NCBI GenBank assembly: GCA_040285825.1
Contig: JAUPSS010000004.1
Coordinates: 6,353,784-6,417,783, forward strand
Length of the DNA: 64,000 bases
From: Eukaryota sp. TZLM1-RC
Lineage: Eukaryota > Protista > Metamonada: BaSk clade
Direction: 5' to 3'
This document shows positions 11,901-62,545 of the stretch, piece after piece. Each line of letters starts with the position of its first letter. Positions within the stretch are counted from its first letter, which is position 1. The notes beneath the pieces were generated by a model. That model was not told the origin of the DNA, made no database searches, and saw only the letters and a list, made by a program, of their open reading frames with translations. The position numbers and the translations under genes were made by a program.

Positions 11901-13022
11901 TTTCTTCTCATAATTGTTCAAATGCACTCAACTAAACCCTTATTTACTAGATTTGAGGTAGTTTCCGGTTTTAATCATCAAACAGGAAGGTTGGTGACGT
12001 CATCTGATTACAAAAGAGATCACTCAATTGTCACTGATGATATTGACAAGCTTTCAGTCGATCTCAGTGGTTTGTTACTTGGCAATATTGCCCATTCTTC
12101 AGCATTTTCTCCATGCGACGGAAGTAAAGTTTCAAGTAGTAAAGTTTTTGACTTTGCACCAGCAATTAGAGAGCCTTCATTAAGTCCTTTTGTTTCTTCA
12201 TTTAATTGCAATTCTTTTGGTCAATGTTATAACAGTTCTTATTATAAAGTTGATGATTTTGGTATCTTTTACTACTCTAAAGTGTTTTTGACGGCTTTCT
12301 GTCTCAATGTTTCTCGACCTTTAATCCACGATCTTTTTGATCCTTTGTTCTTGACTTCCCATGACTTTTCTAAATTTTTGTTTTCTAATATTGAACTGTC
12401 TTTTCAATCAATTGCTTCGTTTAGATTAACCTTGGTTATCATATTCTTTATTTTATTGATGGTTTTTCGGTTTACTATATTCGCTTCTGCCATCAAAACC
12501 ATAAGTTTAGACGGAAAAAGAACTAGAAGAATGCTCAAAATGGTTCCAAATGAGTGCAAAGATCGAGACTTGCTGAAATGGGACGACTCTCTTAAGATTG
12601 GCGTAGACTGGATTGATGAGCAGCATAAGAAGCTAGTTTTCATTATGAATCAGGTGTACCGAGCAGCTGTAGTTGACGGAAAGTCAAAGAAGATACTCTC
12701 TGATGCATTGTTTAATCTATTGGAGTATACTAAAACTCACTTTGCTGATGAAGAGAAATTCTTTGATTCTTTTAATTATCCAGGGGCTGCTGCCCATAAA
12801 TCTTTCCATAGAAAACTAGAAGGACAGGTTTTGGCGTTTTATGAAAAATTTGAAAGGGGAGAAAGCCAAGTTGATATGAATTTACTTACATTTTTAAAGA
12901 ACTGGTTGGTAAATCATATTTTGAAAAGTGATCTTCATTACGTTGAATCTTATAAACACCGTCAAGACCAACTTAATACCAACAGTGAAGTTGATTTAGT
13001 TTTAGTGGAAGATGGGTATTAG
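8913..13022 (+). CDS. TmcB/TmcC-like multi-pass membrane protein with C-terminal hemerythrin domain
   Basis: N-terminal multi-TM block with SRSHGRFD and LPYH motifs, then a helical region and further TM pairs. RTRRMLKMVP tail followed by hemerythrin WDDSLKIG-IDEQH-HFADEE-HKSFH-WLVNHILKSD (about 12579-12945). Confidence 0.85.
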   Translation: MASAVFGIFYLMIQNNSSLKKITFFAFLLAFSQFWTFTFETDLYADIPGANSLISLLNFLQPNLGPTDPSSRFQFFLFTSVGILIVCIVLYLSVRTAISFNKGIFTSLLSVRLLRLLGLALLSVLFIPNLQLLLGPLHCSNVNGKFIIDSLTTPTDCYTFPNILYQVFAFTSVMILVPFAAFLSLVYFNSDYTSTDLLSRSHGRFDLVYQLSKVTVVFATTFISSNFTKFFVISFISFLLLYYYLFYLPYHKTFTSFMCSFMYSSIWTSSLFTLFLTMGEVSDGGFKFDFELLGSFELGFPQLSFSFFFLVAVINVLSAIIVIKKLFFVGKYLDGPRLVKLVQSVKISEPQTYLSVACHPDPFMSSTTTQNLGIDTSSSSIPDLSWHPKFCPCQECCNLCVNCNSVFELERCCRYYLRQISKDQVEIKPKFSTSLLAMVSILYVHGYQLLKKSRNSTLISFMFNNSVVKLQPKFEQLTENFKTGISKVHDNHLYSMLPMDVKFLNFVDEQEQLRSTSSSVMSASQNGSRAEHITQNLEHARNQMSIVEYLDFQRLVHQINKGHVTAVNQLYAFWSCLVTAMAGSPYHTKRLTIIASNLVETEARSFVLLNELMLKFSKHPLVYYKAASFIRDVLSDDQMASKLEAVATTLNKEEPESGSVVANSVVDGSVADTSGVFNSTESSINFDDVHSSRDDSDSNLIKKIYRISFYLLTVLLIVLVGVHYFFEHNSLTRAEQFKNFAEFKSVYSYFTGVASEILDDVSPELFSDKLRSVVSKLRTYHRVAFRSLRQRPFWRSSLKLLSNQDFVIEIGPFSSEMSFYDVFLDFSRRSLTILDHSIDQQRLFVEQLISFSESAVVPSFDSVLKSFSLTESNSFYIIFSSVLILTSFGIIFFSIRQVINCFGNLNQNRASALRLFLEIDPNIIIKVADSLHTTSLKLGLKLPKLNSDSFSKTKSTAADRTKLLSGSGVSYSNSLSGLLWKICLVFLILFVIILGCFLLIIVQMHSTKPLFTRFEVVSGFNHQTGRLVTSSDYKRDHSIVTDDIDKLSVDLSGLLLGNIAHSSAFSPCDGSKVSSSKVFDFAPAIREPSLSPFVSSFNCNSFGQCYNSSYYKVDDFGIFYYSKVFLTAFCLNVSRPLIHDLFDPLFLTSHDFSKFLFSNIELSFQSIASFRLTLVIIFFILLMVFRFTIFASAIKTISLDGKRTRRMLKMVPNECKDRDLLKWDDSLKIGVDWIDEQHKKLVFIMNQVYRAAVVDGKSKKILSDALFNLLEYTKTHFADEEKFFDSFNYPGAAAHKSFHRKLEGQVLAFYEKFERGESQVDMNLLTFLKNWLVNHILKSDLHYVESYKHRQDQLNTNSEVDLVLVEDGY

Positions 13023-25300: not shown

Positions 25301-26397
25301 CTAGTAGTGAAACCAATCACACCATTAGTACATTCAAAATCAAAATCATTCTCAAGTCTATTAAAGTCATGGCAATCAAGAGTAATTAAACTGTCATCAT
25401 GACCCGGACAATAACTAATCACCTTCCCATCAATTTCCCCAATCCAACCCCTGGCTTTTTGACTACTTTCCCTTTTGAACTGATGAAACAACCAGCCTCT
25501 TTCATTGACATTGTTACCAGTACCAAACTTGGAAATACAATGCCCATCATCCACATACACAAATCCGTCACTGGAAAATAAAGAAATTGGATGAGAGAGG
25601 TCAAAATTAACTGGAGAAATTACCTGCCACATTGACTGTTCTGCAGAAAAGCTAGGAACATCAGGATCAGCTGTGGAAGCGTCATCATGGTGAGCGGAGA
25701 GGGTAGACAAGAAGGGCTGGGGATCAAAGGAAGTAAGAGTTGAGAACGTAGAAGAAAAGGAAAGAGAAGAAGGGACAGACAGAAGAGCAGCAATGAAGGA
25801 GAGAGCAATGGAGAGAGAACCGGTGGAGTTTATGATGGAAAGAATAAGAGATGCACATTGGTTGACAGAGGAAGTGGAAAGCTCAGTGAAAGAGGAGACA
25901 AGCTTGGCGAGGTGAAGCCAGGAGGAAGACGGCTCAGTAAAAAGAGATAGAAAAGGCTGGTTCGACAGTAGGTTGGAGATGTCATCAAGAAGGAGAGGAG
26001 CCAGGGCAGGGTCTGATTGAGCAAGTTGAGAGAGCGTATGAGATTGAAGAAGAAGAGAGAGCTTATCAGATGGTGATATTTGAGAGTCTTGTTTAATAGG
26101 TGTAACATTGAAAGAACTGACAGCCATGTCAAGTGAGAGAGCATCAAGTGAAGAATTGAGTGCGGCTTTATAATGTGAATGGCGTAGAGAAAGACGAATC
26201 TCAAGAAGTTTGGTGAAGTGATCATACAGAGAGGAAATTAGGTGGCACTGATCAAAACTGGACTGCTCAGTGCACTCTTCAGCCACGGGAGGGTCCGAAT
26301 CTTTGAGTCTTGAAAACCAAGAACGAATGAACTGAGCATCAAAATGATGTTGAGGTAGAAACTGTGACAGGACAGTTTCAGGTGAAAGAGAAGACAT
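22345..26397 (-). CDS. large protein resembling HECTD4/ZZEF1/MYCBP2-type N-terminal regions, with a CUB-like domain and a UIM-like motif
   Basis: SDGFVY..ISKFGTG..G segment. HPY..DYTDKVSFPGAEYLTFEFDPRSSTE..YDYL..FSWHSDGSNTDWGYK CUB-like domain. EEEEVDADFLLALQLAAED UIM-like motif. First ATG at 26397. Confidence 0.7.
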   Translation of the reverse strand: MSSLSPETVLSQFLPQHHFDAQFIRSWFSRLKDSDPPVAEECTEQSSFDQCHLISSLYDHFTKLLEIRLSLRHSHYKAALNSSLDALSLDMAVSSFNVTPIKQDSQISPSDKLSLLLQSHTLSQLAQSDPALAPLLLDDISNLLSNQPFLSLFTEPSSSWLHLAKLVSSFTELSTSSVNQCASLILSIINSTGSLSIALSFIAALLSVPSSLSFSSTFSTLTSFDPQPFLSTLSAHHDDASTADPDVPSFSAEQSMWQVISPVNFDLSHPISLFSSDGFVYVDDGHCISKFGTGNNVNERGWLFHQFKRESSQKARGWIGEIDGKVISYCPGHDDSLITLDCHDFNRLENDFDFECTNGVIGFTTRKNTLFCIKRVENEGNIGFFCGWTAEKGQVHSIIDWKPLSISSPDFILSNLTEERFIQCNFICNYFYLYIFLPCENNSTMIKFNIIKLKDLSLTKTGVIPSINCCYSNDDDRWFTVEQEDFNCLLCEYVLNTSDRFYSPSVLRQSIINDFVDSHQLAKGLIMEIDRLVSAYSVAQCVLVSGDSESNVQIPFVLDLGKEIFILFADFLGFLISNYEIDQNSKNFMDRCQKFGVNTDSNDFSLIKQALVKETDQFILVLLKSLQLHLVSLIRHQFDFKPFNEELTKIKDFMFKLFCLCDDHHILSLTAHLLETSIEIFFPQLRARSALLPMIFDEKLPEVARISMLKGLVDLPVSSFLFYPPTTMEISNFHLEQNNLNYNSGIHSLKQFLLNSFSLFNSRYSEFNRTANGALYKIISNLVVRVQSEVKTSPVDDGLIEFLIEFYQILLDESICFLSNIDSSKFSHDLLKQTPIFTLLPMLTDVILSLNISKLDLLNPLINQITSSINQIQSIRPLSPAIDALYLCIPRKNVNASPVLIATKIMESHDSEGNVIHPYRNDQDYTDKVSFPGAEYLTFEFDPRSSTERRYDYLVISKKPEREAQIGKYTGSSRNDYPSGPVKVTTDTLYFSWHSDGSNTDWGYKVTVKAYGAGISPLPQLNWVDDLLSSLGHLLGKLNSLMFLKGSRVAALENFTKFCELPFFLSKSSALKYLSICLAWSSKPEVRHDLFLDVPSIKKRDEFPEKSDFLLGSFPDDEVELHEAVMKFYTLDLVKLLETCSTQLKDENEGVLCEISSILSCFICNFSEKDLKYLYNSQLVPVITKIFTTLSTLSNSKPSQDSGEDTMDDEAKQQIKALEEEEVDADFLLALQLAAEDGGEQGEIALKQLQDIESKKRKKEEIIMAQKQKEQLKEVNKYDKLFVFCKFILDLLTFTPTSIKLDIPDSPPSPPEDMIVENQISNSGSESNDRNSDFDSMEEDSYRSPSDDEM

Positions 26398-26789
26398 TTG
26401 GGATACCAGGGTATGAAAATTTACTATTGTGAATTTCACTTATCATGCATTCCCTTGTGAAATTCACTCCTGTTTTCAACTTTCGACTGGTTTTCTGCGT
26501 CTTCGACGGGGCATTTTTTAGTGCCCTTCAACTGTATTTCTTTGGTTTTGTTGGCATCAGGCTCACTTTTCATTTCTTTTTTTAATCGTCGTTTCTTTTT
26601 CGGTGGTTCATCCAGCTCATCTGTGTTTTCTGAGTCATTATTGTTACCTTCAGGGGTCGAAAGCAGTTCTTTACCATTATTTTTCCATAAAAATTTCTAA
26701 ATCTATTTTTCAAACTTTTTCTGTTGATTTTAAATATTTGGTAAGGACATTTTTTTTTCGTATGAATGATTTATTTCAATAAAGAACTA

Positions 26790-46980: not shown

Positions 46981-48670
46981 TGCGTTGAGTGTGGATTATG
47001 ATTCTGGGTTGGTGAGGTAGCTTTTAAGCTTTTATTACACTGAAATTTGTGTTTTTTTGTGTAATCTTTTAGAATGGGAGGTAGTGGGATTTTCTGTCTA
47101 TTTATCCCGATTAATTTACTCTTTGTTCAAAGTATTGGTTACTTTCCGATCACCTTTTGTTTCGGAGTATGCAAGTTGGTGTTTATTGTTTCAGTGATGA
47201 CATACTTTGATGCCAAAGTATGAGGAGAATCTCTTTCAAGGAGTGGCAAATCCTTCAAAAAGATTAAATATTTACTTGAGCTTGGTTCAGGTTCATCACT
47301 TGTCGATTTCAAGTTAATCTTGGAGCTTTGTTTGACTCACAACTTTGTACTTCACTAGAGCAATCTGCCTTTTGTTTTACATCTCAAATTACAGTTTCCA
47401 ATAAAAATCAAATCTATTATTTTGAATTTCAAGAGTATTATTTTTCACATCTTTAGACATGAAATTGTCTACTAAATTATATTCTTATGGGTGATCAAGA
47501 AGTCCGTCTTTGAGCAGTGGGGTAGTTACAATAATTGCCATTGATGTTGGAACACTATGTTGAAGAAGACCTCCAATCTAAAACATCTATTAGAGTGACA
47601 TTTATTGAAGGAATGGTTTTGCTAAAGGAAAAGATGAAAAGTGTCACAAATAGCACGTAAACCAATTACAAGAACGCGATTTTTTCTCAGGAACTTCAAG
47701 GCTAACATCAAAGTGTGTAGTTTCAAATATCTTTGACAAGGCTGAAGGTTTTTACAACAAAACATGGAATTCACAAGATGGCATCAAGTAATTGGCTGAA
47801 ATGATTGAGCATAACATTTGGTCACTGTTACTGCAAGTACGTGCATCATTGAAAGGCAACTTTGGTCAGATGCTTTAACATGGTTCAACAGACTGTTTTA
47901 AATGTAATGATTCATTATTACCGCTTTCCTGATATTGTAATTATTTTCTCCCAATGACTGAAATACTTTTTTTCCACAAAGTTCTTCGTCACCCTCCACA
48001 TGGTTTGTCCCGCTTTACGTTTAGGATTGTTTCCTGCATCTTTGATTGCCATTTCCAGTTAAGTTTTTTCAATTGTTTTTCTCATTGTCATTTCACAAAG
48101 TTATTATATGTTTGCAACATCACCTTAGCTGTAAATCACTTAAAGATTGGAAGTTTTTTTCTGAAGTTTGGGGCCACGCAGTTTGGAACTTACATCGCAT
48201 AAATTTGATATAGTTTTTAGATACAAGTAGCTGCATTGATTTCTTCTTCTTCAACTAGCTCAATATACTTTACTTCTGCATGTAGTTACTTTTCTAGCTA
48301 AGCTGATCATAATTTTCCAACTTCGAAATGCAAACGTTTCCAAGTGGGGAAAAGGTATATCTCAATTAGAAAAAATCTGTAACTGAAAGCATGATGAAGT
48401 TTTTTCAAGTTTTTTGATAAAAAATGAGTCAAAATAGCACAGGCAGTTTAATGACAAAAAAATTTATTGTATTCGACAACTTGATTTATAGATAGCAATT
48501 TGACCAAGCAGTTTGGAATCAGAAATCCACTGATCTTGAAAGTGGGTCACCACTACTTCAGTTAGACCTTCATGGACAATATCTTTTGGAAAATATTTCA
48601 TGGAGTTATCCATAGAAATGGGGAGACATTAAGTCGTTGTGTGCTTGAGAGGAATGATACTCCCTCCCCA

Positions 48671-49500
48671 TGTTCTATTCGCTTTAGCTAAACGTGTTTT
48701 CCAGAATAGGAAAGTATCACGTGTACATTAGATTAAATTTGTTTGTGTTCACAAAAGCTTTCTTCAGGTGTGTTCATCTAGGCCATTTGGTCCTGAATTC
48801 CTAGAAAACAAAAGCCCTTGGTACCTCTCTTTATTGTATGATGTTTAGTTCTGAAACATCTCCTCCTCTTTTGCCTAACCAATCCTCTCACATCTCCAAG
48901 CTTCATCTAAGAAGATGACGGACTCCTGGGAATCCGTCAACTCGTCCATCTCACCAATTGAGCTGCCTGAGCCGTCTCACAAGCCCAAAGTCAACGATCT
49001 GAACAAAAACAGTTTTTGTTCTGCGCATGAAGCTCTACAAACACTATAATCATTTCGTTGAACATACATACTCCACAAATTATATCCTAGTTCTCTTCTG
49101 GTTAGGAACTCTATATCGGGTTCACCTCTGAAGACTGTTGTTTATCTGGTTAAGCCCTGTTTGTCCTCCTTGCTGATATGATATCCTCCTTCCATGATAT
49201 TATGATATGATATTCCTTGTTGATATGTAGCCACTAATTCTCGTATTAGTACTCATTTTGGATGGAATTTTTGAAGTCACTGATAATTCTACCTTGTACT
49301 TTGGGATGATGGGTCCACGACTATTCAGCATCTTGACTCTATTGTGAATACCTTTGCTTACTTTCGATATAGGAAACATGTCGATGTACCCAAGAGCCGC
49401 CAGAAAAGAAACAAGAGGCAGTGTTGGCCTTTACTAAACGTGTTTTCCAGAATAGGAAAGTAATACGTGATCATTTGTTTAAATTCGTTCTTGTTATTTT
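48671..49500 (+). mobile_element. eroded small LTR element with chromodomain-like remnant
   Basis: Direct repeat with a 29-bp identical core (48688-48716, 49434-49462). Purine tract AGAAAAGAAACAAGAGGCAG precedes TGTTGG at 49422. Internal YLVLWDDGSTTIQHLDSIVNTFAY. Confidence 0.55.
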
Positions 49501-50656
49501 TATATTGGGTTTTTAACTATTGACATAAACTGATGTTTTTTCTTCATATGCATTGGGCACGAACGCCAACAGTTCATTTTCCAGCGCATATTGTTTTGGT
49601 TCAAATGGTGTAAAGGAGGACAAGCTGTTTGCCATTGCAAACAATAATACATACTATCTGGCATCTTCACCTTAGCTCCAAAGAATTTTTAAATATTGAA
49701 TATTAGGAAAAATTCCCTGAAAACAACTTAAGTTCCATTAGTAATAAATCGATAAACTTATATTCACTTAGGAACACACAAACGAACAGTGAAATTGAGT
49801 AGAAAGGGTTGGTAGGACGCACTCCACGGCTCTATTAAAGGGAAAAAGACCAATAACATCAACGTTATTGTTAGTGTTCAGTGCTGTGACCAAGATAAAA
49901 CTTTATTAGATTTCAAAAATCGAAATCGAAATTCATGATTGTTAAAGTCGAGCTCAATTGCAGATAGAATGATGATAACATTTTCATTGCATGACAGAAG
50001 ATTAAACAAAAATCTATTTAGGTCAATGAAACGTGACATCACATGACTTCTGTAAACTGCAATTTAATATCTGATAATGGATATGGGCTAACACAAAAAC
50101 TACCGCCACGTCATCATTTGTGATTTTAAATGTATATTGTGATAAAACATGTTTAGTACAGAAATTTGGATGCTACTAATTCAAATTTTTACATAATTTT
50201 TTGATTGCAAAATTTGAACAATTTCCCATATTGAAATTTCAACAAAGCAATCCTATGACTCTTATTTACGACATAAGAAAGTAATTACATTGAAACTTTT
50301 AATCTAAATTACCGATACATTCGCCTTCGTTTTTAACAAAATGATGAGTCTTATTTTTGAATGAAGAGCACTATAAATCATTTGCATATATCTGTAATTG
50401 CTCCAGAAATTAATGGTATTGATTTCGTTCTCTGGCAACGTTGGAATTTTAGAATTAGATCTTTTCTGAAAACAGTTTAAAACACTCATCGCAAAAACAT
50501 TAAATTCATCCTCCAAGTCACAAAGAATTTTTGCTTCCAACTTAATTCCAACAGACTGTTAGCTAATGGTGTAGAATATGAGCGAAAGTTTAAATTCTAT
50601 AACAATACAATTTCTTCAATATTTACAATTTATAACAAAAACATCTATACAAAATC

Positions 50657-53600
50657 TCAAAGTCTTTCCACATGTCTAATAGCATCATAAACTTGATCAC
50701 TTCTCAAATCACCCAATAAATGTCCAACATCTTTTTCTGCTGCCAGATACTCAGCCACATTGTCAGAACCTTGAATTTGGATATCTCTCAAGCATCGGTA
50801 GGCAAATTGCTTCAACTCAGATAGCAACTCGTCCTTTGAATAGTCTTCAACCACTGATTGCATGAAGGCCTTCTGAGAACCGGAAAGTGCACCAGTTCGG
50901 TATTGCTGATGGATGTGTTGTGAACAATCAACTCCATTAAACGAGTTCTCAATTGTCACCAAAAGAGCTGGCACTTGCGAAATTGACAGTTGGGTAATAG
51001 AACCAGGTAGATTTCCAAGATTGGCAATGTTGGATTCTTGCATAAACGAATGAATACTAGATTCGTACAAACGAGCACATTCACCATTATTGCTTAAAGC
51101 AACGCTATCCAAAGCATTGACCACAACTTGAAGATCTTGATAGACCTTAAGACGATCGTTTGCTGACATTTCCAATTGGAAATTGGGCGGAAGAGGTTGT
51201 TCCTCGCCAAAATCGCCAGTAAAGGCACCCATAAAAGCATAAAGAGCATAGGCATTGGTAGGAGGGGCTTCAGGAACTGTGAATTGAGGACGAAGTAGAT
51301 TAACCCTAATAAGTTGGGTATAAATTCTATCCAAAACCCTTATACCTACTGAACCATCATCACTTAATTGTAAAACATAACCATATTTTGTAAGGGAAAG
51401 GTCAACAAAATGAGAAGCATCATAAGAATTCCAAGGAACAGAAGCAACTTGTTGACCAATTGTTGGGAAGATTGCGAGGCTGTTGTGAGCGCTCATTATT
51501 GCCGTAATCAGCAACTGATTGAGTGACGGTTGACCAGTTGATCCAATCGTATACGGATCCAAAAGATGTTCGTCTTCAATATTTTCAGGTAAATCTCTGA
51601 CATTACCCTGACAAGCCAGATTTGTTTCTTGACGCTGGTCAAGCTGCTTAAGAATCCCAACACCATCTGAATAACTTTGTTTGGCTTGTTCATAAGTGTT
51701 GGAATCTTCATTCTGAACGATTTCCCTCAATTGGCGGTTTTTAATGTTGTCTTGAGTACTGTTTGAGCGAACGTAGCTATCAACCCAGTTGAAGAACCTT
51801 GAAAAGGCAGATAACTCCTTGCCTGCTTCAATGAAGGCTATATTCTTTCGAAGTTCAGCTTCATCATCGCCAAAATTTCGACAATCAAGTTCCAAATTAG
51901 AAGTATTGATTGGAATGGTTGAAATAATTGAAACCTGAGTAGGCAAAGATAATTGTTCCAAATATTCAGCATCTTGGCGAATAATTCGGTGATCCAAATT
52001 AGCGTGGTTGTGAACTTGATCACGTTGATCAGGTGCGGCACAAAGTTGTTCCATAACAACACGCTCTAATTGCTTTTTCTGTTGGACAGTGGTAGTAATG
52101 AATGATCTACCTACAGAATTGGTTCTGAAATAAGAAAGTTTTCTGGATAATTCAAATGGATAATTTCCAATATTGCCCCCATTATCTGCCTTTATTACTT
52201 CAGAAAGTAAATCTCTAAAGTAAGCAACTGATGAATTAACTTCCAATTTACGGTTCATTTGGGCAATAAAATCAGGTTTTAAAATACACCTCGCAATCAT
52301 AATTGATAAAGTGACTGCCATCAGCTTCCGGTAAGCAGAAATATTAGAATAAGGCACTAGGTTCCTGATATGGCCTTCCATTAATTCAAAGTAAACCGTG
52401 AACGGAATAAAACCTTGGGACCAATTGTCTTTGAATTGATTGTAAATAATTTGATTGTAATGACGAGTATTGTCCCTTGTATCACGATGAAGAAATTGTA
52501 ATTCATTTTGTTGGCAAACAACACACCTCTTGTCATTTCTTAAAGCATATCGAGCCTCTTCCACAGTAAAATGAGTAATTTCACCACAATCCATGACATC
52601 GAGAGTGGCAAAACAGTTTCTACAATAGTAAAGATGAGTTCTGATTGATGGATCCATTATACCAAACTTGGAAAGGATAATACTAGGCCAACAACCGGGA
52701 ACATAACAGTTTTCAATAGTGTTGGCATCCACCAACTCTTTGAATCCAGGTAAATCAATAACTTCCAAAACAGGAATCAAAAGAGCCTTATTATCGAAGC
52801 TGGAAAATAAATCACAGATATTTTGTGGTAATCTAGGTAAAATTGCTCTAAATTCGCCCCTTTGAAGTCCTAAAAGACCTCTCAGATGATCAGGATTAAG
52901 TTCAAATTGCTGACGTTTCAAACCAGCCACTGCTTGTTGAAATTGGCGAGAACTAGGCCAATTGGTATCCTTCACCATTGGATTGAGAGCATCTAAATCT
53001 ACAGGCAAAGCTGAACGCAATTGAGCTTTAGTATTGTTATCTACAGGACTATCTCTTCTGGAAACTTCATTATACACAAACTCTACAACCTGCGAACTTC
53101 CATAAGCTGATGAAAGGTACCTCAATGCACATGACTTAACTCCAAGGAAATGATCAGTATCGAGTTGTTCAGAAAGAATATATCTCAAAATAATGGGGTG
53201 AAGAGGTAAATTGTTATCAACATCGTGTTGAACTTTGAGCATGAATCTCCTAGAATATAATATAATACGAGCAATGTCGTTAACTCGAGTTAAATGTATT
53301 CTAATTTGATCGTAAATAGTTGAATCATTGAAATTAACACCAGACTGAAGCAGACAGTTATTAATAACTGATGTCAAAACACAAACAACAATCCTGAATA
53401 CACCAACATTATCTTCAAAGAATTTTAAGAATGGAGAAATCAAATCACCGCAGATGTCATGCAAATCTTCAAAAGAATTTGCACTTGAAAAAATAGAGGA
53501 AAATAATACGTGTAAAACAGACTTCAAATGTTCAAGTCCTAGTGACTTGAAAACATCAACATATTCTTCCGCCAGTAACAACCTTTCTTCATCATTCCTA

Positions 53601-56600
53601 AACGCTTTAATAATAGAGCAAAATAATCCAAGCTTGAGATCATTGAAATCAGGAATGATGTTTTCAATGATGTAATCAATGACCTCTACATTTAACTCAA
53701 GAGGGGAAGAAGGCAAAAGTGATTGATCAAAATCATTTAGAATCAAATACCGGAGCCAAGTGACAAGAACATTGTACCAATCAAGATGATGGTCAGGAAC
53801 CAACGGATGGACAGTCAAAAGATCAGTGCACAAGGTTCTATACTTGACGGAATTGTCTCGAATTACTAACAAACGACTACAAAGAGAGCACCAATCTCTT
53901 TTCACGTTAATTATCTCATCATCGTCATCAGAGTCTTCAGCTTCCTGATTTGATTGGGGCTCATCATTATTTGATTGATTACACCGTTGATTGAAGTGTT
54001 CATTGACAAACTTGAAAGCTCCTTCATAAATCACCATGTCCCGATTTTGAACACTTTTAGAGATAATTTTACATAATTGTTCAAAAGAATTATAGCCACC
54101 AGAATTAGAGAAATAAGTATCAATTTGCACCTCGGAATAACCCCAGTATTTGAACATTTCGATTCTGCAATCTTCTAAATCCAAGTTATTTAGATAATCC
54201 TTAACGGAATCTGGTAATTGTTCCCAAACAGTTGCGAAATCTGCACTGGTTTTGTGAATAAATTGAATAATTCTGCAAATAAAATAAATCAAGGAAGAAC
54301 CAATGGAGGGAGAAACATTACCAAAAGAGACAAAGCTAGGATTATTAGGATCTGATAAGTCTGAAATTCTATTTAAAAAGCTCAAACGCTGGACATCTCC
54401 AAATAAACCAGTATTTGGATCACAGATTCTTTGAAAGTAATCCACAATATCAACTCCTCGGGAAGGATTTACCAATAATAGACAATTAGAAAGCAAACGG
54501 ACTTTCTGATCCAAAACCTTCCTAATATGATCCTTGACGAAATGGTAGACAAAATCTTGAAGGCAAGAGTAATTGCCTAGGGCGCTCCTGTCAACCCTGA
54601 AAGGAACATTAATTTGGGCCAAATCAGCATCTAATATTTGATATAAAGACTCACACACTGATTTCAAATGATCTTGGTTTTCATAAATGGACTTAATGAA
54701 AGCTCCACTAATAGCAAATACTTCCTTGTTGAACAACCTAGTTGCCAAAAACAACACTGGTAAGAGTTCCCTAATCATTTGAATCACTGTTTCTTCCCTG
54801 ATATGTTGTCTATCCAAACGGAAAGAGGTTACATCATTAGTTCTCATTAACAAAGGCTTATCATAACCAATTGCGTCGCAATAGTAGGAGCTAAAAGAAT
54901 CAATTGGGGAGAGAGTATAACCATTACCATCAATAACAGCAATCACCACATCACAAGGAATTTTCTCATTTGTAATGAAACTAGAAACAGTGGGAAAATG
55001 ACGAAGTTCCATTCCCTTGACAACAATAACCATTAAGTCAGTATCAGTTACAAGGTCCTTTGCAGTAGATAATAGCTCAACCAAATCATCATTACAATTA
55101 GCTTGATCGATAGAAAACTCCTTAACTTGAGAGTAGGGGGACAAACTACGGGGAACAGAGCCCAAGTACTTGGAGTGGATAATGATTCTATTAGGATGAT
55201 TAGAATTACTCATCAATGACAAATGATATTCCATAACTTGCTCAAAAGACAAAAAGCCACCATATTCAACGTTAATACTGGAGCATAGAGCTTGCACTTG
55301 ATGGCTTTCTTCACCAAACATTTGATATGCACAGTAAAGCGGCATTTGATGTTCAGAGATTACTCTGGTCATTTTATCTCTTCCTTCAACTGAGAGTATT
55401 TCTGGAACAAACTCCTCATGATTAAAAGCATTAATATGATTTAATCCACAAATACGGTATAGTTCCTTTCCAAGATCAAGCTGCGAGGAATCCACTTGAG
55501 CCCACAGGTCAGACAAATTAATCTTCTCCAATCTGTTGAGTAAAGCAATGGGTTGACTAGGGAGTTCAGAGGAAGAACAAACAATAATAACTCTTGTAGA
55601 TTTGTGAACATTGATTACCCTGGAGCCAGAAGAACCTAAAGCAATTTTACTCCTACCCAGTCCTTCTCTGTTGATTTTGAGGTAGTTTCTGTTTAGAAGA
55701 TCAAAAAGAGCACCAATAATGTTCTGTTGAGCCGATAATAGAATAACTTTACCAGAGGCGGCGTATTGAATGACTTTAGCTAATTGAACATAAGAGAATT
55801 CCTTATAAGAATCAGCATCATAGCTAGAACCGGGAAGTTCTCTCACATCAGCAGCTCTTGGATGCTCTTCCAAAATGCTTCTTACCAAAGGCATTGACCC
55901 AACAAGCATCAAATGCCGGGCAAATGGTCTTTCATCAGAAATATTGACAGAAATTGCTCTTCTGATTGATGATTCTAAATCTAAAGGAGTTAGTGGTTGC
56001 TCATATAAAAAATGAAACCAATTTTGGTAAGCCCTTGCATAAGGTGAATTATCAAGTACTGGCAAACCACCATAATTTCTATACAAAATGGAGTAATGAT
56101 CTTCCATACGAGTTTCTGGATCAGCAACGGTTCTGACAAATGAATAAGCATCCCGACTACCAAAGAAACTTTCAATTTTTCCTAAATCAGTCTTAATTTT
56201 AGCAGTATTTGTCAATTGCAGATGCATTTTGGCAAAATGTTCAGCCAATAAATGATTATTGGACAACTGGCGTAGAGTACTGGCTAGTTCTTGGGTACTG
56301 GGATTAGGTCTTTGAACAATAATTGATCGCGAAGAAGGTGCAGCATCAAAAGCTGAATTACTAATACCAATAAATGCATAAACATTCTCCTCATCATCCC
56401 TCAGCTTTTCCTTTTCTAGAATGGTGTGGAGAGCCTTCAAGGGGTTGGCTGGAGCGTCAATCATAAGAGATAATTCATCAATAATAAGACATGGAATGAC
56501 ATCTCTATTCTCAGCCTTCTTTTCCACATTCTCCACGGCGTTCATTAGATTTTCAGTAGTGGCAGCTCTACTTCCTTGGAATGAAACGGTAGAAATATTA

Positions 56601-59600
56601 GGTAAGGCAGGATCCTTGTTATCTAGGTAGAGATAGCTGGTCAAAAGATTCAATGCCAAGGATTTTGATTGACCTGGAACACCAATAATAATGACTGGAG
56701 TTTTGGTAACTATTCCAACAAGCATAATAAACAAATTTTCAATTAAAGCATTGTTTAAAACAATATTCATATGGTCAGGTCTGGGAACTGATTGGGCAAA
56801 CCTCAACATTACTTCATTGATAATTGCAGTAGTAGATTTCCTCCGACTTAAGTTAAATCGAGAATTGATGATCTGATCTACCTCTCTTCTTACCTCACCT
56901 TGGGAAACCCTGACTGCATAGCAGACGTACAAAGCAATTGCGATAATAAGATTAAAAGATTTTTCTGGAATGTCAAATACTTTAAAACCCTTCTCAAATA
57001 ATAAACCAATTCCATCAATCATCTTTTTTACTCGTTGAACATCCCTTAGGGATACCATCCAACTACTACCCCTTAATTGACCAAGTATATGATGTATTTC
57101 ACAGACAGCGTGGCATATTCTTGAGCGAATATCAACAATTGCTCGTTGGTTTAGAGAAGTAAAACTGACTTTTTCAGAAATCTTTTGAATGTATTCACGT
57201 TCATCATTGACTGAAAGTGATCCAAAATCTAAAACAAAGTCCTCAAAGGTGATGGGAGAGGGCAAGACATTATACAAAGGCTGATTATCACTTCCAACTT
57301 GGTTATAAGGGTTGATTGCCAGAACAAGACGCACATTTGGTTCAAGAGCAAGTCCATCAATTCTTCTATTGGTAATTAAAGAACACACTAAACCAAAATG
57401 CTCGCTGGCGTTGACTTCATCCAAGAACAAGATCGGGTAAGTGTCTGAAACCTCCGGGACTGGTGTAGGAATAGCTTCACCGGATAAGGTGTCGTTATGG
57501 GCGATAATACTATCACGTTCAGCTTGGAATCTGTTAGTTTCAGCACGAGCTAATTGATTTATTTCTGCAATAGATTCAAACAACTTGTTGAGAGGGGTAC
57601 CTGCATTGAAGGTGAGTCTTCTAAAAAGATCATCAAAGCGATCACCAAATAGAATAGAAGCACAATGAGTCAAAAGATAGGTTTTACCAACTCCACTAGC
57701 GCCCTTTAAAATAACAGGAATGTTGTATTTCAACTTCATAACAATAAAGATTTCCTTCAAAAAGACATCCTTAGTGAGCACGAAATTTGGTAAACGATTC
57801 GTAATCTGTTGAGAATCATACTGGTTCAGGGTTGAGTAAGACCTAATTTGCTTTTGCCTCTCTTCTTCCGTATCAGGTGCGGGATCTCTGGTTTGTCTGT
57901 GAAGTTTCTTGAATTCGGTTGGCAATGAATTGAGAGCGGCATCAGGAATCAGCATATGTGATTCACCTGTCCATTTACTCATAAAGAATAAGGGAATTTT
58001 GAAATTATTCCATGATAAAAATTCATTTTCTTGTGAATGACTCATAAACACTAAGTGCCTACAGTTTCCTAATAACAAAAGTCTACATTGTTCTTGAGCA
58101 CGAACAATTGAAGTTTGACTTAGCGTTTGATAGGCTTCAAGACTTTCTGTTTTAAAGAAAACACTAATTTCAAAGTGAGAGATTTGAGCAACAAAAGCAG
58201 TAGCCAAATCGCGCAACATTTTGTAGGAAAGCCTTTGAGAATTGATTGCAGGGAATCCAGGTACTTCGATTGTGAATAGAGAATGTAACGATTCAAAAGA
58301 GTTATTGGTAGGAATGGGAGTATTAAAATACTCGGCCAAGTATTGTCTTGCCTGATCATAAACTTGGTGCATAGGATCATTGGGAAGAACACTGATTAGT
58401 GCAGGGTTGTAAACTAGAGTTCTTTTAGAGTTCCATTTGTCAGGAACAATTGATTTACACAATACTTCGCCCCAAAAGACGCCTTCAAACAAATCCCATC
58501 GAGAAGGACTGGGTAATTCCAAGTAAATCTTGGCATCAGAAAGGGCAATCTTACCATTGATACGAATACCATTTAGGTAAATTAATGAAAAAAGAATGGA
58601 CATGAGATTAAAAAAATCTTGTCTTAAAGGTAATTGTCCTGTAGCTGAAGTAAATAGAGCAGGATTCCATTCCCGTCTGAGTACATCTAAGGGCTTGTTT
58701 AGATCTATATGAATAAAATCAGTATTGTTTCGTCTAATGTTTTCTAATCTTTCAATAGTCTTTTCAATGGAAATTGGACCAGAGAAAACAATATAATTAT
58801 CACCACACTTTTCTCTAGCAGAAGTCGTTTTGCCATTACCTGGATAAGGTGAAAACAAAATCTCTGAAAGCTTGGGTTGACACCTAACATTTGCAGGGGC
58901 AACTTGACCCTCCTTACCACCCAACTGAATGCTCGCAGATGTAGTAAATATAAAAAGCTTGACATTCACGACTTCTGAACTTGTTAGGGTTCTTAAATGT
59001 TCTTTGGCTTTGAAGGAAAGCTGCTCAGGAGCGATGATGACACCGTGTTTCGTCGCACAACCAGAAATAAAAGCAGTAATGGTTGCTAAAGAAGTTTCAA
59101 ATGAACAAAGTAAAAACCTGCTAATTGTGAAAGGAATTCTTTTAAAAGAAGCAGTACGTAAAGCATCAGTAAAAATAGTGGAAAACGATTCACTTCTGAT
59201 AATAACAACATCTTTGCTGTGGCTAGCAGCAATGCGGCTTAACCTAGTGACATAATTTTCAAATCTATTAATCAGGTTATCGACTTCAGCTCCTTCAAGC
59301 GGAGGATACTGCAAATCACACTCAGCATCGAAAACTTGGTTTGGGAGTCTACTATTAATAGCTTTTAATTCCTCAATGTTTCTACCCAAAAAGTAATCCC
59401 GCAATTCAGCTCCAGTAAGTCCAGCAAATTCATTAACAGATTGGTATCGATCGACTAAGTTATTCCAATTATTGAACAGGATTTTTTGGCTTTCTACAGC
59501 AGACTCAAGATTAGATAAATCACTTAATTCAGCAATCTGTATAGTCCAAACGCGAGGTTCATATGTATAACCATTATCTACCAACAAATTAAGGGTGGTG

Positions 59601-62545
59601 ATGAGTTCCGTTACTAAAGAACACAACTCAATAAAAAAGCGAAATGAAACATTGTTTGAATTGACATCATCGTCATTGTTTTCAGCAGAATCTCCGCATT
59701 TGAGAATAACATTACAACGGACTTCAGCAAACTGTTCAGCGCTGACGCGTATTTCTCTTCGATCTTGGGGAATTCTTAAGGAAACTTCTAGTGCAGATAG
59801 GTCAAGTTCTATTGAAGAATTTCGCAGTTGTGTTTCAATAATAAGAGATACTAATTGTTCAATTTCATTCGTTGAAGTATCCATCAGGCGGCGAATTCCA
59901 TCAATAGATTCTATAAGACTTGAAAAAACATCAGACACTTCAAAAAGGGTATTTTGATTGGAAGAAAAACCTTCCTTGATAGCAAAATCTTCTAGTTTTC
60001 GGAAAAAGGCTGGTAAAGTGATTTTAACAGGACTATAGAAATGAGGTAACAATACGCCTCTGCAAAGAGAATCATCAGCTTTGAGTTGTTGTAAAAAGAA
60101 ATTCCTAGTTTCAACAGATGCCACAAACAATGAAGCAGTACTCTCCGTTAGAATGTTATCAATTTCTTCAGAATCTCGTGAAGCCAGTTCGTGCATATAT
60201 TCCAAACACTTACATGATGCAGAGAGAGGACCACTGAGAGCAACAGAAAAGGGAACTTCTAATTCTTGATCGCCGAGTTCCAATGTATCAAGAAGACGTG
60301 AGGTTTGGTCGTGGTATTCTGCGAGAGTATTGGGAACACTGGAAGCAATAGATTTGAGTGAACGAGCTTCTTTAGGGGGAATTATGATGTTGAGGCAAAA
60401 TTTAGCAGATTTGATGGCATCAATGAGAGCAAACAGGCCAACAAAATACTCATAAAAAGAAAAGCGTCGTAATTGTGGCGTAAATCTACCCACAGCTCCA
60501 TGCTGATCAACCAATGAAAGCAGCTGAAGTTCATAATTGAAGCTATCCCGAAAACGTGGAGTCTGCCATACAGCTAAGTGTTCGAGTTGGACAGGGCCGT
60601 TAAAGTTATTTACAAACTCCACCAAACGATGTCTAAACTCGCCAACCCAACCTTCTTTTAATTCTTGGGGACGGAAATGATTAAACAGAATCGTTTGAAC
60701 TACATTACATAAAACATTGAGGTAAGTATCATTCATATTAAACACCCTTTTAAACTCTTGACATGCAAAGAAAGTTCCACTACAAACTAAACCAAAATCG
60801 TATTCATTGAGAAGAACTAAAGAATTACGTAGCCCATCTATTGCATACTGAATAGCTTGTTCTTCGCGAGGGTGACCAAGGGGAACTGATAATTGTTTGA
60901 GCATTCTTAATGATTCTTCGGTTTGGCGATAAATACCAACAGCAATACCAATCAAACCACGAAGTTCATCTTCATCAAAACCTTCAAAAGGAGGAAGGCA
61001 CTCTATAAGGCGATCTGTATTTGCAAAAAGGAAATGGGCATCTTTGAAAGAGATTTCTTGACTTATTAGCCTTGATTTGAACCCAATAAACAATTGTTGC
61101 AGAATGTTGTATTTTGAATTTCGATTATCAATGTGGAACCTTAAGACCCTCCAACCAGCTTTCCATAAAGGGTTCATAAACACTGCCAAGTCTGGATCAT
61201 TTAGGGCTACTGCAGGCAAACAAGACTCAAACTCATTGATTACTTCATTAGATTCCCATCCTTCAAACCAAGGGGGAAGCTGGGGAACATTGAACATCGA
61301 GAGAGCTGAAGAGGATTGTGTAATTGATCTTATTGCTTGCCTAATGCTCTTGGACACATCTGGCCATGATTGAACATAAGATCCTACCCTGAGGATAAAA
61401 TTGGGAGACTCTGTACAGAAAAACGAGGAAAAAGAAGGGACGAAGCTTGAAAGTTTAGGCGAGACACAGAGGAGATCGATGAGTTCAGGCTTATCAGAAA
61501 GAACTTTGCGGCATACAAGTCCATAAAGATCTTGTGGAGTAACAGAAAGATCGTTGAAGGAAGTGAAAAAGAATCTGACCAAAGAGTCAAGGTGGTTGTT
61601 TTCTGAAAGATAAGGGACTAAAGCGGAGACATAGGAATCATGGATCGGAAGTTCATAATACAGAGTTTTGAGATGTTTAGCAGCCAAGGAAAGGATTGGA
61701 CGAGACAGAACAGTAGGAAGTGTGTCATGGAAAAGGGAAAGCGATTCTTTCGGATGATGGAGAAGGGTTTCTCTGATAGAAGCCAAACATTGATGGAAAT
61801 AGGTGGACTGGTTTTGATTATGTCCATGAGGATGATGGCTCTTCTTCCTTCCCTTCTTGCTTTGGATTTGATTTTGATGATTCTGATATTGGCCAGAATA
61901 TAACAGATGTTGTGGAACTTGACGCTGACCATGGAAATATTTGTAGAAAACGTTCACATTTGGATCCTGAACACTATGGCATTGAATCAAAATATTGAGG
62001 TATTGGTGAATTGGAATTGGAAAATGCTGCATTATGGTTAGAACTTGACGAGGGTCAACATGGGTGACAACACCGTCCACCACACTGAGCATAACGCTGC
62101 AGTAGTAGTGCTGCTGATGCTGGAAAAGGAGATCGAACGACCACGTGACTCCTGCGAGATCATTATTGTCGGGACGCACTGGTCTTGATTGAGCAGAGAT
62201 ACCGATCATAATGTCATGTAAAACCCGTCCAACACTTTCCTGTGGATGTGTTTGGGCAAACGCATTCAAATAATCGCCAGCTGCGATGAATCTTTTAACA
62301 ACTGACGCTCTAGGATCAACCAAAACCTGGTTTGGGTGTTTAATCTGATACTGATGAGGATCAACACTGCGAAACTTGGCAACTACTGTTTTCTTGACGT
62401 ATTTGGCTGCCCCACACCACAAGGTTCCTTCACCCATCCTTTTTAGCTGTGTGATATGGTAAGGGTGTTCAAGGGACGGCTTATGGCGAGTGGCACCCAC
62501 TAAGAACAACAGAATCGGCTCATTGTGTACAGAGCGTGGTGTCAT
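50657..62545 (-). CDS. RNF213/mysterin-like giant AAA+ ATPase-E3 ligase (3962 aa, intronless)
   Basis: Motifs collinear with the RNF213 dynein-like core: PGNGKT, GASGVGKT, FLDEVN, VSLRDV, ENLF..GVPGQSKSL, SFQGS, IDEL..NPLKALH..LE, FIGISN..D, FFGSRD, RNYGG, LFDLLN, LLNRLEK. C-terminal RZ-like YYCRNC..MDCG..CVVC. Confidence 0.88.
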   Translation of the reverse strand: MTPRSVHNEPILLFLVGATRHKPSLEHPYHITQLKRMGEGTLWCGAAKYVKKTVVAKFRSVDPHQYQIKHPNQVLVDPRASVVKRFIAAGDYLNAFAQTHPQESVGRVLHDIMIGISAQSRPVRPDNNDLAGVTWSFDLLFQHQQHYYCSVMLSVVDGVVTHVDPRQVLTIMQHFPIPIHQYLNILIQCHSVQDPNVNVFYKYFHGQRQVPQHLLYSGQYQNHQNQIQSKKGRKKSHHPHGHNQNQSTYFHQCLASIRETLLHHPKESLSLFHDTLPTVLSRPILSLAAKHLKTLYYELPIHDSYVSALVPYLSENNHLDSLVRFFFTSFNDLSVTPQDLYGLVCRKVLSDKPELIDLLCVSPKLSSFVPSFSSFFCTESPNFILRVGSYVQSWPDVSKSIRQAIRSITQSSSALSMFNVPQLPPWFEGWESNEVINEFESCLPAVALNDPDLAVFMNPLWKAGWRVLRFHIDNRNSKYNILQQLFIGFKSRLISQEISFKDAHFLFANTDRLIECLPPFEGFDEDELRGLIGIAVGIYRQTEESLRMLKQLSVPLGHPREEQAIQYAIDGLRNSLVLLNEYDFGLVCSGTFFACQEFKRVFNMNDTYLNVLCNVVQTILFNHFRPQELKEGWVGEFRHRLVEFVNNFNGPVQLEHLAVWQTPRFRDSFNYELQLLSLVDQHGAVGRFTPQLRRFSFYEYFVGLFALIDAIKSAKFCLNIIIPPKEARSLKSIASSVPNTLAEYHDQTSRLLDTLELGDQELEVPFSVALSGPLSASCKCLEYMHELASRDSEEIDNILTESTASLFVASVETRNFFLQQLKADDSLCRGVLLPHFYSPVKITLPAFFRKLEDFAIKEGFSSNQNTLFEVSDVFSSLIESIDGIRRLMDTSTNEIEQLVSLIIETQLRNSSIELDLSALEVSLRIPQDRREIRVSAEQFAEVRCNVILKCGDSAENNDDDVNSNNVSFRFFIELCSLVTELITTLNLLVDNGYTYEPRVWTIQIAELSDLSNLESAVESQKILFNNWNNLVDRYQSVNEFAGLTGAELRDYFLGRNIEELKAINSRLPNQVFDAECDLQYPPLEGAEVDNLINRFENYVTRLSRIAASHSKDVVIIRSESFSTIFTDALRTASFKRIPFTISRFLLCSFETSLATITAFISGCATKHGVIIAPEQLSFKAKEHLRTLTSSEVVNVKLFIFTTSASIQLGGKEGQVAPANVRCQPKLSEILFSPYPGNGKTTSAREKCGDNYIVFSGPISIEKTIERLENIRRNNTDFIHIDLNKPLDVLRREWNPALFTSATGQLPLRQDFFNLMSILFSLIYLNGIRINGKIALSDAKIYLELPSPSRWDLFEGVFWGEVLCKSIVPDKWNSKRTLVYNPALISVLPNDPMHQVYDQARQYLAEYFNTPIPTNNSFESLHSLFTIEVPGFPAINSQRLSYKMLRDLATAFVAQISHFEISVFFKTESLEAYQTLSQTSIVRAQEQCRLLLLGNCRHLVFMSHSQENEFLSWNNFKIPLFFMSKWTGESHMLIPDAALNSLPTEFKKLHRQTRDPAPDTEEERQKQIRSYSTLNQYDSQQITNRLPNFVLTKDVFLKEIFIVMKLKYNIPVILKGASGVGKTYLLTHCASILFGDRFDDLFRRLTFNAGTPLNKLFESIAEINQLARAETNRFQAERDSIIAHNDTLSGEAIPTPVPEVSDTYPILFLDEVNASEHFGLVCSLITNRRIDGLALEPNVRLVLAINPYNQVGSDNQPLYNVLPSPITFEDFVLDFGSLSVNDEREYIQKISEKVSFTSLNQRAIVDIRSRICHAVCEIHHILGQLRGSSWMVSLRDVQRVKKMIDGIGLLFEKGFKVFDIPEKSFNLIIAIALYVCYAVRVSQGEVRREVDQIINSRFNLSRRKSTTAIINEVMLRFAQSVPRPDHMNIVLNNALIENLFIMLVGIVTKTPVIIIGVPGQSKSLALNLLTSYLYLDNKDPALPNISTVSFQGSRAATTENLMNAVENVEKKAENRDVIPCLIIDELSLMIDAPANPLKALHTILEKEKLRDDEENVYAFIGISNSAFDAAPSSRSIIVQRPNPSTQELASTLRQLSNNHLLAEHFAKMHLQLTNTAKIKTDLGKIESFFGSRDAYSFVRTVADPETRMEDHYSILYRNYGGLPVLDNSPYARAYQNWFHFLYEQPLTPLDLESSIRRAISVNISDERPFARHLMLVGSMPLVRSILEEHPRAADVRELPGSSYDADSYKEFSYVQLAKVIQYAASGKVILLSAQQNIIGALFDLLNRNYLKINREGLGRSKIALGSSGSRVINVHKSTRVIIVCSSSELPSQPIALLNRLEKINLSDLWAQVDSSQLDLGKELYRICGLNHINAFNHEEFVPEILSVEGRDKMTRVISEHQMPLYCAYQMFGEESHQVQALCSSINVEYGGFLSFEQVMEYHLSLMSNSNHPNRIIIHSKYLGSVPRSLSPYSQVKEFSIDQANCNDDLVELLSTAKDLVTDTDLMVIVVKGMELRHFPTVSSFITNEKIPCDVVIAVIDGNGYTLSPIDSFSSYYCDAIGYDKPLLMRTNDVTSFRLDRQHIREETVIQMIRELLPVLFLATRLFNKEVFAISGAFIKSIYENQDHLKSVCESLYQILDADLAQINVPFRVDRSALGNYSCLQDFVYHFVKDHIRKVLDQKVRLLSNCLLLVNPSRGVDIVDYFQRICDPNTGLFGDVQRLSFLNRISDLSDPNNPSFVSFGNVSPSIGSSLIYFICRIIQFIHKTSADFATVWEQLPDSVKDYLNNLDLEDCRIEMFKYWGYSEVQIDTYFSNSGGYNSFEQLCKIISKSVQNRDMVIYEGAFKFVNEHFNQRCNQSNNDEPQSNQEAEDSDDDDEIINVKRDWCSLCSRLLVIRDNSVKYRTLCTDLLTVHPLVPDHHLDWYNVLVTWLRYLILNDFDQSLLPSSPLELNVEVIDYIIENIIPDFNDLKLGLFCSIIKAFRNDEERLLLAEEYVDVFKSLGLEHLKSVLHVLFSSIFSSANSFEDLHDICGDLISPFLKFFEDNVGVFRIVVCVLTSVINNCLLQSGVNFNDSTIYDQIRIHLTRVNDIARIILYSRRFMLKVQHDVDNNLPLHPIILRYILSEQLDTDHFLGVKSCALRYLSSAYGSSQVVEFVYNEVSRRDSPVDNNTKAQLRSALPVDLDALNPMVKDTNWPSSRQFQQAVAGLKRQQFELNPDHLRGLLGLQRGEFRAILPRLPQNICDLFSSFDNKALLIPVLEVIDLPGFKELVDANTIENCYVPGCWPSIILSKFGIMDPSIRTHLYYCRNCFATLDVMDCGEITHFTVEEARYALRNDKRCVVCQQNELQFLHRDTRDNTRHYNQIIYNQFKDNWSQGFIPFTVYFELMEGHIRNLVPYSNISAYRKLMAVTLSIMIARCILKPDFIAQMNRKLEVNSSVAYFRDLLSEVIKADNGGNIGNYPFELSRKLSYFRTNSVGRSFITTTVQQKKQLERVVMEQLCAAPDQRDQVHNHANLDHRIIRQDAEYLEQLSLPTQVSIISTIPINTSNLELDCRNFGDDEAELRKNIAFIEAGKELSAFSRFFNWVDSYVRSNSTQDNIKNRQLREIVQNEDSNTYEQAKQSYSDGVGILKQLDQRQETNLACQGNVRDLPENIEDEHLLDPYTIGSTGQPSLNQLLITAIMSAHNSLAIFPTIGQQVASVPWNSYDASHFVDLSLTKYGYVLQLSDDGSVGIRVLDRIYTQLIRVNLLRPQFTVPEAPPTNAYALYAFMGAFTGDFGEEQPLPPNFQLEMSANDRLKVYQDLQVVVNALDSVALSNNGECARLYESSIHSFMQESNIANLGNLPGSITQLSISQVPALLVTIENSFNGVDCSQHIHQQYRTGALSGSQKAFMQSVVEDYSKDELLSELKQFAYRCLRDIQIQGSDNVAEYLAAEKDVGHLLGDLRSDQVYDAIRHVERL

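Follow-up and report, generated by a model that had tools for sequence, protein, structure and literature searches.

Vertebrate RNF213 (mysterin), which counts 5,207 residues in human and is represented in the PDB by human (8s24, 9g08 and 9jw1) and mouse (6tax and 7oik) entries, is built from an N-arm, a dynein-like AAA core, an E3 module, a zinc finger and a C-terminal domain (CTD), in that order. Its RING-independent thioester transfer of ubiquitin needs, in the mouse and human proteins, an AAA core that binds ATP, the free cysteine of the RZ finger and the CTD as a dock for the ubiquitin-conjugating enzyme, E2 (10.1101/2021.05.10.443411; PMC11549300); the CTD was described as the E2 docking domain in mouse RNF213 (10.1101/2021.05.10.443411). 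The RING is dispensable for activity (PMC11549300), and the RZ finger and the CTD are required (10.1101/2021.05.10.443411; PMC11549300). Four residues of the human finger are zinc ligands (C4505, H4509, C4525 and C4528), the cysteine of a Cys-Gly dipeptide on the finger loop, C4516, is the nucleophile (PMC11549300; mouse numbering in 10.1101/2021.05.10.443411), and H4537 has been proposed as the general base (PMC11549300). ZNFX1, the other RZ-finger family, follows the same finger logic of four zinc ligands and a free cysteine nucleophile (10.1101/2025.10.14.682297). Here we analyse a stretch of 64,000 nucleotides (the window) from the metamonad Eukaryota sp. TZLM1-RC (contig JAUPSS010000004.1 of assembly GCA_040285825.1, positions 6,353,784 to 6,417,783) and describe in it a gene whose product, hereafter the window protein, is very probably a true member of the RNF213 family.

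The source organism is Skoliomonas litria, an anaerobic bacterivorous flagellate of the metamonad BaSk clade that lives in alkaline hypersaline soda lakes (PMC11603281; 10.1101/2023.05.03.539051). The gene occupies 50657..62545 of the minus strand as a single open reading frame of 3,962 codons without an internal stop, and the NCBI gene model for the 3,962-residue product is identical to it. By our own arithmetic, the chance of a frame of this length staying open is about 1e-124 (stops assumed at about 0.07 per codon; GC of the DNA about 36%). The gene is real and correctly delimited. The preliminary description of this DNA, made from its letters alone, had already marked this frame and read the product as a compact RNF213-like giant AAA+ protein of a unicellular flagellate. 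Each part of that reading agrees with our results, as the protein has 3,962 residues against 5,207 in human RNF213, the host is a unicellular bacterivorous flagellate, and RNF213 alone was matched in the PDB, both by sequence and, at E <= 0.001, by fold.

Order of parts and the AAA core

The window protein has its parts in the same order as vertebrate RNF213, from N-arm to CTD, and is collinear with it. This homology and architecture, like the intact motifs and the conserved finger cysteines reported below, are direct observations of the analysis. The parts are as follows (residue numbers are those of the window protein; pLDDT, predicted local distance difference test).

50657..62545, minus strand: RNF213-family gene, complete and intronless (single open reading frame, 3,962 residues and stop codon)
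62318..62521, minus strand: N-terminal beta domain, seemingly degraded CBM20/48-like, residues 9-76 (AlphaFold2 beta strands and paralogue alignment)
61796..61972, minus strand: His/Gln-rich low-complexity linker, residues 192-250 (pLDDT < 50, biased composition)
59831..61795, minus strand: helical N-arm or stalk, residues 251-905 (AlphaFold2, Foldseek, hhalign)
58823..58843, minus strand: P-loop-like PGNGKTT, residues 1235-1241, putative AAA2 site (motif search)
55505..57808, minus strand: AAA3-AAA4 core, residues 1580-2347 (two Walker A/B pairs; matched to human and mouse RNF213 by phmmer)
57680-57703, minus strand: Walker A GASGVGKT, residues 1615-1622 (motif location)
57416-57433, minus strand: Walker B ILFLDE, residues 1705-1710 (motif location)
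56660-56683, minus strand: Walker A GVPGQSKS, residues 1955-1962 (motif location)
56474-56491, minus strand: Walker B CLIIDE, residues 2019-2024 (motif location)
53917..55504, minus strand: post-AAA4 region, residues 2348-2876, presumed AAA5, AAA6 and hinge (from collinearity)
52676..53916, minus strand: helical equivalent of the E3 module without RING, residues 2877-3290 (AlphaFold2 pLDDT 75-92, VIA-align)
52487..52636, minus strand: putative variant RZ-type zinc finger, residues 3304-3353 (hhalign and conserved cysteines)
50660..52288, minus strand: C-terminal domain homologous to the RNF213 CTD, residues 3420-3962 (hhalign)

The clearest sequence similarity lies in the AAA core. When the window protein was compared with all PDB sequences by phmmer (cut-off E <= 0.01), nine distinct sequences were matched and all are RNF213. 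Residues 1580-2347 align collinearly with AAA3-AAA4 of the human and mouse proteins (E 3.5e-42 to 9e-39) at about 25% identity. Both Walker A/B pairs are intact and align with human GETGCGKT/FFDE and GKPGSSKS/VLDE; they keep the equivalents of human K2426/E2488 in AAA3 and K2775/E2845 in AAA4. The motif positions and the collinear alignment thus confirm the AAA core that had been noticed at about 55520-58860, with RNF213-type motifs in the RNF213 order. RNF213 has six AAA units in all. Upstream of the two pairs, PGNGKTT at residue 1235 may represent a non-hydrolysing AAA2 nucleotide site, because it lies about 380 residues before the AAA3 Walker A and because AAA2 of mouse RNF213 has ATP bound with no hydrolysis possible (Ahel 2020, PMC7311170). 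For the post-AAA4 region the matches are weak: residues 2350-2850 reach 43% probability (P 2.5e-4) by hhalign against the RNF213 family, and a BaSk profile matches the Chilomastix protein P0008 there (E 6e-8).

The N-terminal 1,200 residues were modelled with AlphaFold2 from nine paralogue sequences (mean pLDDT 74). The model begins with the beta domain (residues 9-76), continues with helices to about residue 190 and the disordered linker (192-250), and then forms a long stalk (251-905), which is all-helical at pLDDT of about 80-90; an alpha/beta region begins at about residue 1100. Foldseek against the PDB returned eight matches at E <= 0.001, all to RNF213 (3.5e-13 to 1e-8). In agreement with this, positions 626-1188 of the N-terminal alignment profile, by our estimate roughly residues 640-1200 of the window protein, match the pre-AAA region of 22 RNF213-family proteins by hhalign (97.8%, P 1.2e-12).

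These searches also bear on the identity of the protein as a midasin- or dynein-type AAA+ protein unrelated to RNF213, which could account for the weak AAA, AAA_5, AAA_7 and midasin-lid signals that Pfam gives at residues 1588-2067, all of them near or below the cut-offs. No midasin or dynein sequence of the PDB was matched by phmmer at E <= 0.01, midasin gave no matches in the Foldseek searches with either the N- or the C-terminal model, and dynein appeared with the N-terminal model only at noise level (E >= 0.011, probability <= 0.14), against 3.5e-13 for RNF213. Moreover, the counterparts of the N-arm, the E3 module, the finger and the CTD are all in RNF213. Such an identity is therefore refuted by the PDB sequence search, Foldseek and VIA-align, and we give it next to no probability; RNF213, rather than midasin or dynein, is the best structural match. 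ZNFX1 is likewise built differently, as an SF1 helicase that lacks the AAA core; its helicase part, NFX1-type fingers and Miz domain have no counterpart in the window protein.

Compared with RNF213, the window protein is about 1,250 residues shorter, with about 800 fewer before AAA3 and about 340 fewer between AAA4 and the finger. RNF213 carries a CBM20 carbohydrate-binding module in its N-arm, whereas the putative CBM20-like domain of the window protein, seemingly degraded, stands at the extreme N-terminus. The beta domain (residues 9-76) aligns with paralogue N-domains that bear the CBM20/48 pattern FNxW ... EYKY ... NR; the N-domains of P0002, P0004 and P0005 are more clearly CBM20/48-like than that of the window protein, and Pfam gives weak matches below its cut-off for two of them (CBM_20, E 0.005 in P0002; CBM_48, E 0.05 in P0004). 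In the window protein and its paralogue P0001 two loops of this domain are deleted and the aromatic motifs (W, YKY) are gone. Pfam found no CBM match in the window protein's own N-domain, the N-domain profile matched only the CBM48 of GlgB in the PDB (E 0.27, not significant), and an ESM Atlas feature search with residues 1-195 gave no usable match. The linker is not found in P0001, where residues 188 to 316 of the window protein correspond to residues 191 to 183. From the beta strands, the CBM pattern of the paralogues, the deleted loops and the missing aromatic residues, we read the N-terminus, with moderate confidence, as a degraded CBM20/48-like head followed by a His/Gln-rich linker. This replaces the preliminary view of the first 250 residues or so as unrecognisable and possibly a lineage-specific sensor.

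E3 module, C-terminal domain and variant finger

The C-terminal third is more divergent, and its relationship to RNF213 is seen mainly in its fold and in profile comparisons. An AlphaFold2 model of residues 2800-3962, built from 18 sequences, has a mean pLDDT of 71 and reaches 75-92 over residues 2890-3290. Only RNF213 was matched by Foldseek at E <= 0.001 (nine entries, 1.4e-7 to 2e-4). VIA-align superposed the model on the focused map of the human E3 module, 9jwg_A, with Z 14.5 over 586 residues (root-mean-square deviation 9.8 A), while the next match reached Z 7.4; model residues 78-960 correspond in this alignment to human RNF213 3858-4968. By these two comparisons the C-terminal third has the fold of an RNF213 E3 module. 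In hhalign comparisons with the C-termini of 22 members of the RNF213 family, residues 3420-3962 aligned with the CTD columns (93.7%, P 1.8e-7), and the finger and CTD together, residues 3250-3962, reached 98% (P 2e-13); deliberately mismatched pairs of regions, used as controls, stayed at P >= 0.44.

The RING of the vertebrate proteins is missing. Neither Pfam at E <= 0.1 nor a search for the C3HC4 pattern found a RING anywhere in the window protein, as had been seen from the sequence at the outset, and its sole cysteine cluster is the finger at residues 3304-3353. CSLC at residue 2886 was considered as a RING remnant and rejected, since it is not conserved in the paralogues. Pfam searches with four further pieces of the protein gave nothing meaningful.

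The cysteine cluster aligns with the RZ finger columns of the family (residues 3250-3420; hhalign 92.4%, P 5e-7). It follows the pattern C3308-x2-C3311-x8-C3320-G ... C3341-x2-C3344, with the residues C3308-R-N-C3311 ... D-C3320-G3321 ... H3325 ... C3341-V-V-C3344 ... H3353, and the hhalign alignment pairs its cysteines with human RNF213 as follows.

C3308: human C4505, candidate zinc ligand
C3311: position of human H4509, candidate zinc ligand
C3320: human C4516, candidate nucleophile
C3341: human C4525, candidate zinc ligand
C3344: human C4528, candidate zinc ligand

The candidate nucleophile in its free Cys-Gly on the finger loop and three of the four ligands, including the CxxC pair equivalent to C4525/C4528, are thus the same as in RNF213, and the remaining ligand is cysteine instead of histidine. 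Across five full-length paralogues, whose overall identity is only about 20%, the five cysteines and the glycine never vary. Some relatives have fingers that bridge the two forms: Chilomastix P0008 combines the canonical CxxGH with a long insert, GEM-RC1 P0136 has CxxCGH, and the finger of P0012, which Pfam recognises as RZ, has CSCG and hence also a cysteine in place of the histidine. A custom RZ profile matches at the homologous site in Chilomastix (5e-7 and 3e-6), in GEM-RC1 P0125 (2e-6) and in S. litria P0005 (1e-3).

Several observations weigh against an RNF213-type ligase with a functional RZ finger. The custom RZ profile finds the right site in the window protein but only at E 0.16, and Pfam zf-RZ does not match the finger; with the fingers of five paralogues Pfam gave only generic zinc-ribbon noise. 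The replacement of a zinc-ligand histidine by cysteine (H4509 in human) turns CxxxH into CxxC, the loop from Cys-Gly to the second CxxC is about 20 residues long instead of 8, and there is no IGG motif. H3353 stands at +9 like the human general-base histidine but is not conserved in the paralogues; a histidine five to nine residues past the nucleophile (H3325) is mostly conserved in them. The finger was modelled at pLDDT 29-55, so that its fold is without structural support. The TM-scores were low (0.22-0.28), because the models are multi-domain. In the C-terminal third, residues 2850-3250 found no match in the RNF213 family by hhalign; the BaSk C-terminal profile did not match RNF213 among PDB sequences; and a hidden Markov model (HMM) of five paralogue C-termini, run exhaustively against 1.84 billion representative proteins, gave 17 matches, none of them canonical RNF213. 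All of these 17 came from three Skoliomonas strains, except one JGI/IMG metagenome protein. A word-based homologue search with residues 2400-3962 found nothing.

The absent RING, the unmatched Pfam RZ, the general-base histidine that is not conserved and the poorly modelled finger would all suit a family member that has lost ligase activity and serves as an ATP-driven scaffold or sensor, with the finger merely a structural zinc ribbon. However, none of the full-length paralogues departs from the Cys-Gly, whose cysteine is not one of the ligands, although their overall identity is about 20%; a finger with a purely structural role would hardly account for this. The E2 dock of RNF213, the CTD, is also retained, and both Walker pairs are intact. 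We therefore consider such a loss unlikely, though it is the least unlikely of the alternatives discussed here. A family member with the collinear RNF213 layout and a RING-independent thioester mechanism is, to our judgement, a good deal more probable and explains the results best as a whole.

Metamonad relatives and decaying copies

Relatives found with the AAA core range over Skoliomonas strains (33-47% identity), Chilomastix, Aduncisulcus, ciliates, the fungus Piromyces, sponges, Hydra, molluscs and vertebrates, and the Aduncisulcus relative is annotated 'RNF213 like' at NCBI. By our own count among the 120 relatives listed, 34 carry a Pfam RZ and 6 a RING. The window protein is thus a new, divergent and RING-less member of the RNF213 family, and not a new kind of system. 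It is less of a novelty than was suggested at first: there are relatives in ciliates, a fungus, Chilomastix and Aduncisulcus, and most of the listed relatives are without RING. Our literature search on RNF213 in protists or metamonads returned nothing specific.

In a FastTree phylogeny of the AAA core the metamonad sequences form one clade (SH-like support 100), within which the Skoliomonas proteins make up two subfamilies; its deep nodes carry long-branch warnings. Chilomastix cuspidata P0007 and P0008 and Aduncisulcus paluster P0009 fall in the same clade and are also without RING. They are 29-31% identical to the window protein in the core and 3,520-5,305 residues long. The Chilomastix fingers share with the window finger the long insert between Cys-Gly and CxxC, although P0008, unlike the window protein, keeps the canonical CxxGH. 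The Skoliomonas paralogues, P0001 and P0005 in S. litria, P0002-P0004 and P0121 in strain TZLM3-RCL, and P0006, P0123 and P0136 in strain GEM-RC1, are collinear with the window protein over their full length at 22-48% identity and share C-x2-C...CG...C-x2-C.

Each Skoliomonas strain has several paralogues, including truncated and fragmentary copies, and related copies elsewhere in the S. litria genome are, to judge from their sequences, clearly decaying. The closest paralogue, P0001 (L002:6001-13902, JAUPSS010000001.1; 2,633 residues, 48% identity), ends at the equivalent of window residue 2801, and no E3 tail was found within 6 kb downstream. About 600 bp after it lies a reverse-transcriptase gene (RVT_1; L002:14485-15366), and it may be that a retroelement truncated P0001. 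The S. litria gene for P0122 (810 residues), on a contig of 1.86 Mb, is a C-terminal RNF213-like fragment, 59% identical over the C-terminal alignment from window residue 2800. It retains the four zinc-ligand cysteines but has serine at the candidate nucleophile (MDSGG, against MDCGE in the window protein), and by this substitution it is a natural counterpart of the catalytically dead human C4516S. P0122 was also considered as the detached tail of P0001, and this was rejected, as the two are on different contigs.

The decay of copies in the same genome, with P0001 truncated before the E3 tail and P0122 bearing serine at the nucleophile, again speaks for a loss of ligase activity. On the other hand, the terminal branch of the window protein itself is short (0.15, with 1.02 for P0001), and this counts against such a loss.

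Another partial copy lies at L003:10022-10627 (JAUPSS010000007.1). This 606-bp fragment is 95.5% identical to window 50660-51265, the last 201 codons of the gene, and is annotated as a 159-residue hypothetical protein (P0126). The 3' end of the window gene seems to have been partially duplicated here not long ago.

The surroundings of the gene within the window contain the following.

46981-50656: about 3.7 kb from a KIF9-like kinesin gene to the window gene's 3' end, without an open reading frame of at least 100 residues
63212-63888, minus strand: upstream neighbour, a cyclase/kynurenine-formamidase-like gene (PF04199), with a gene model of 212 residues against an open reading frame of 151, consistent with an intron
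8913-13022, plus strand: open reading frame of 1,369 residues with TmcB-type TPR repeats and, at the C-terminus, a hemerythrin domain
22345-26439, minus strand: open reading frame of 1,364 residues with zero Pfam matches

Proposed activity and meaning for the family

Since the window protein retains the AAA core, the CTD and a finger whose candidate cysteine is free, its most likely function, by analogy with mouse and human RNF213, is that of an ATP-gated, RING-independent ubiquitin ligase; catalysis itself appears somewhat more probable than its loss. In the mechanism that we propose, ATP bound by the AAA core would switch on the E3 module, as in the mouse and human proteins, and ubiquitin-loaded E2 would dock on the CTD. 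Ubiquitin would then pass to a thioester on the free C3320 of the finger loop, the finger zinc being held by C3308, C3311, C3341 and C3344, and would be handed from C3320 to a substrate. It is by inference that we speak of ligase activity, of ATP gating and of zinc binding, as of any substrate or part in defence.

What such a ligase would act on can be addressed by analogy. Human RNF213 uses its RZ finger to ubiquitylate lipopolysaccharide and needs no RING for this (PMC11549300), and the S. litria protein could similarly belong to a cell-autonomous antibacterial machine that ubiquitylates lipopolysaccharide or lipids on engulfed prey or endosymbionts. The host is bacterivorous (PMC11603281), the expansion of paralogues with truncated and fragmentary copies is a pattern typical of conflict genes, and some paralogues carry CBM20/48-like N-domains. 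However, the aromatic motifs of that domain are missing in the window copy, prey is digested in phagosomes whereas RNF213 acts in the cytosol, and RNF213 has roles in lipid droplets and metabolism as well (10.1101/2021.05.10.443411). An antibacterial or lipid-ubiquitylating role is thus a speculation from analogy, bacterivory and the birth-and-death pattern of the family, and we regard it as rather improbable. Equally doubtful is a broader reading that would join these observations, in which RNF213-type machines represent an ancient, pre-animal system of cell-autonomous defence or of tagging non-protein substrates; in free-living bacterivorous metamonads this system would live on in a fast-turnover family of RING-less paralogues, whose CBM-like sensor heads could be swapped and whose RZ finger is all-cysteine, the catalytic histidine having moved to the nucleophile loop (H3325).

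Returning to the window protein as a divergent RNF213-family member, its existence will hardly surprise the field, given the ciliate, fungal and other metamonad relatives already in the databases, and it is of moderate interest to the study of how RZ-type ligases evolved and work. The parts of RNF213 behind its unusual chemistry, namely the E3 scaffold and the CTD, the pair of active AAA modules and the free-cysteine finger, coexist here in a metamonad without the RING from which RNF213 is named, and their co-occurrence supports the view of the RING as an accessory element. It also places the origin of the RNF213 architecture well before the animals. As a compact, intronless and naturally RING-less protein, the window protein may, together with the cysteine-to-serine fragment P0122, form a possible comparison set for dissecting the RZ mechanism.

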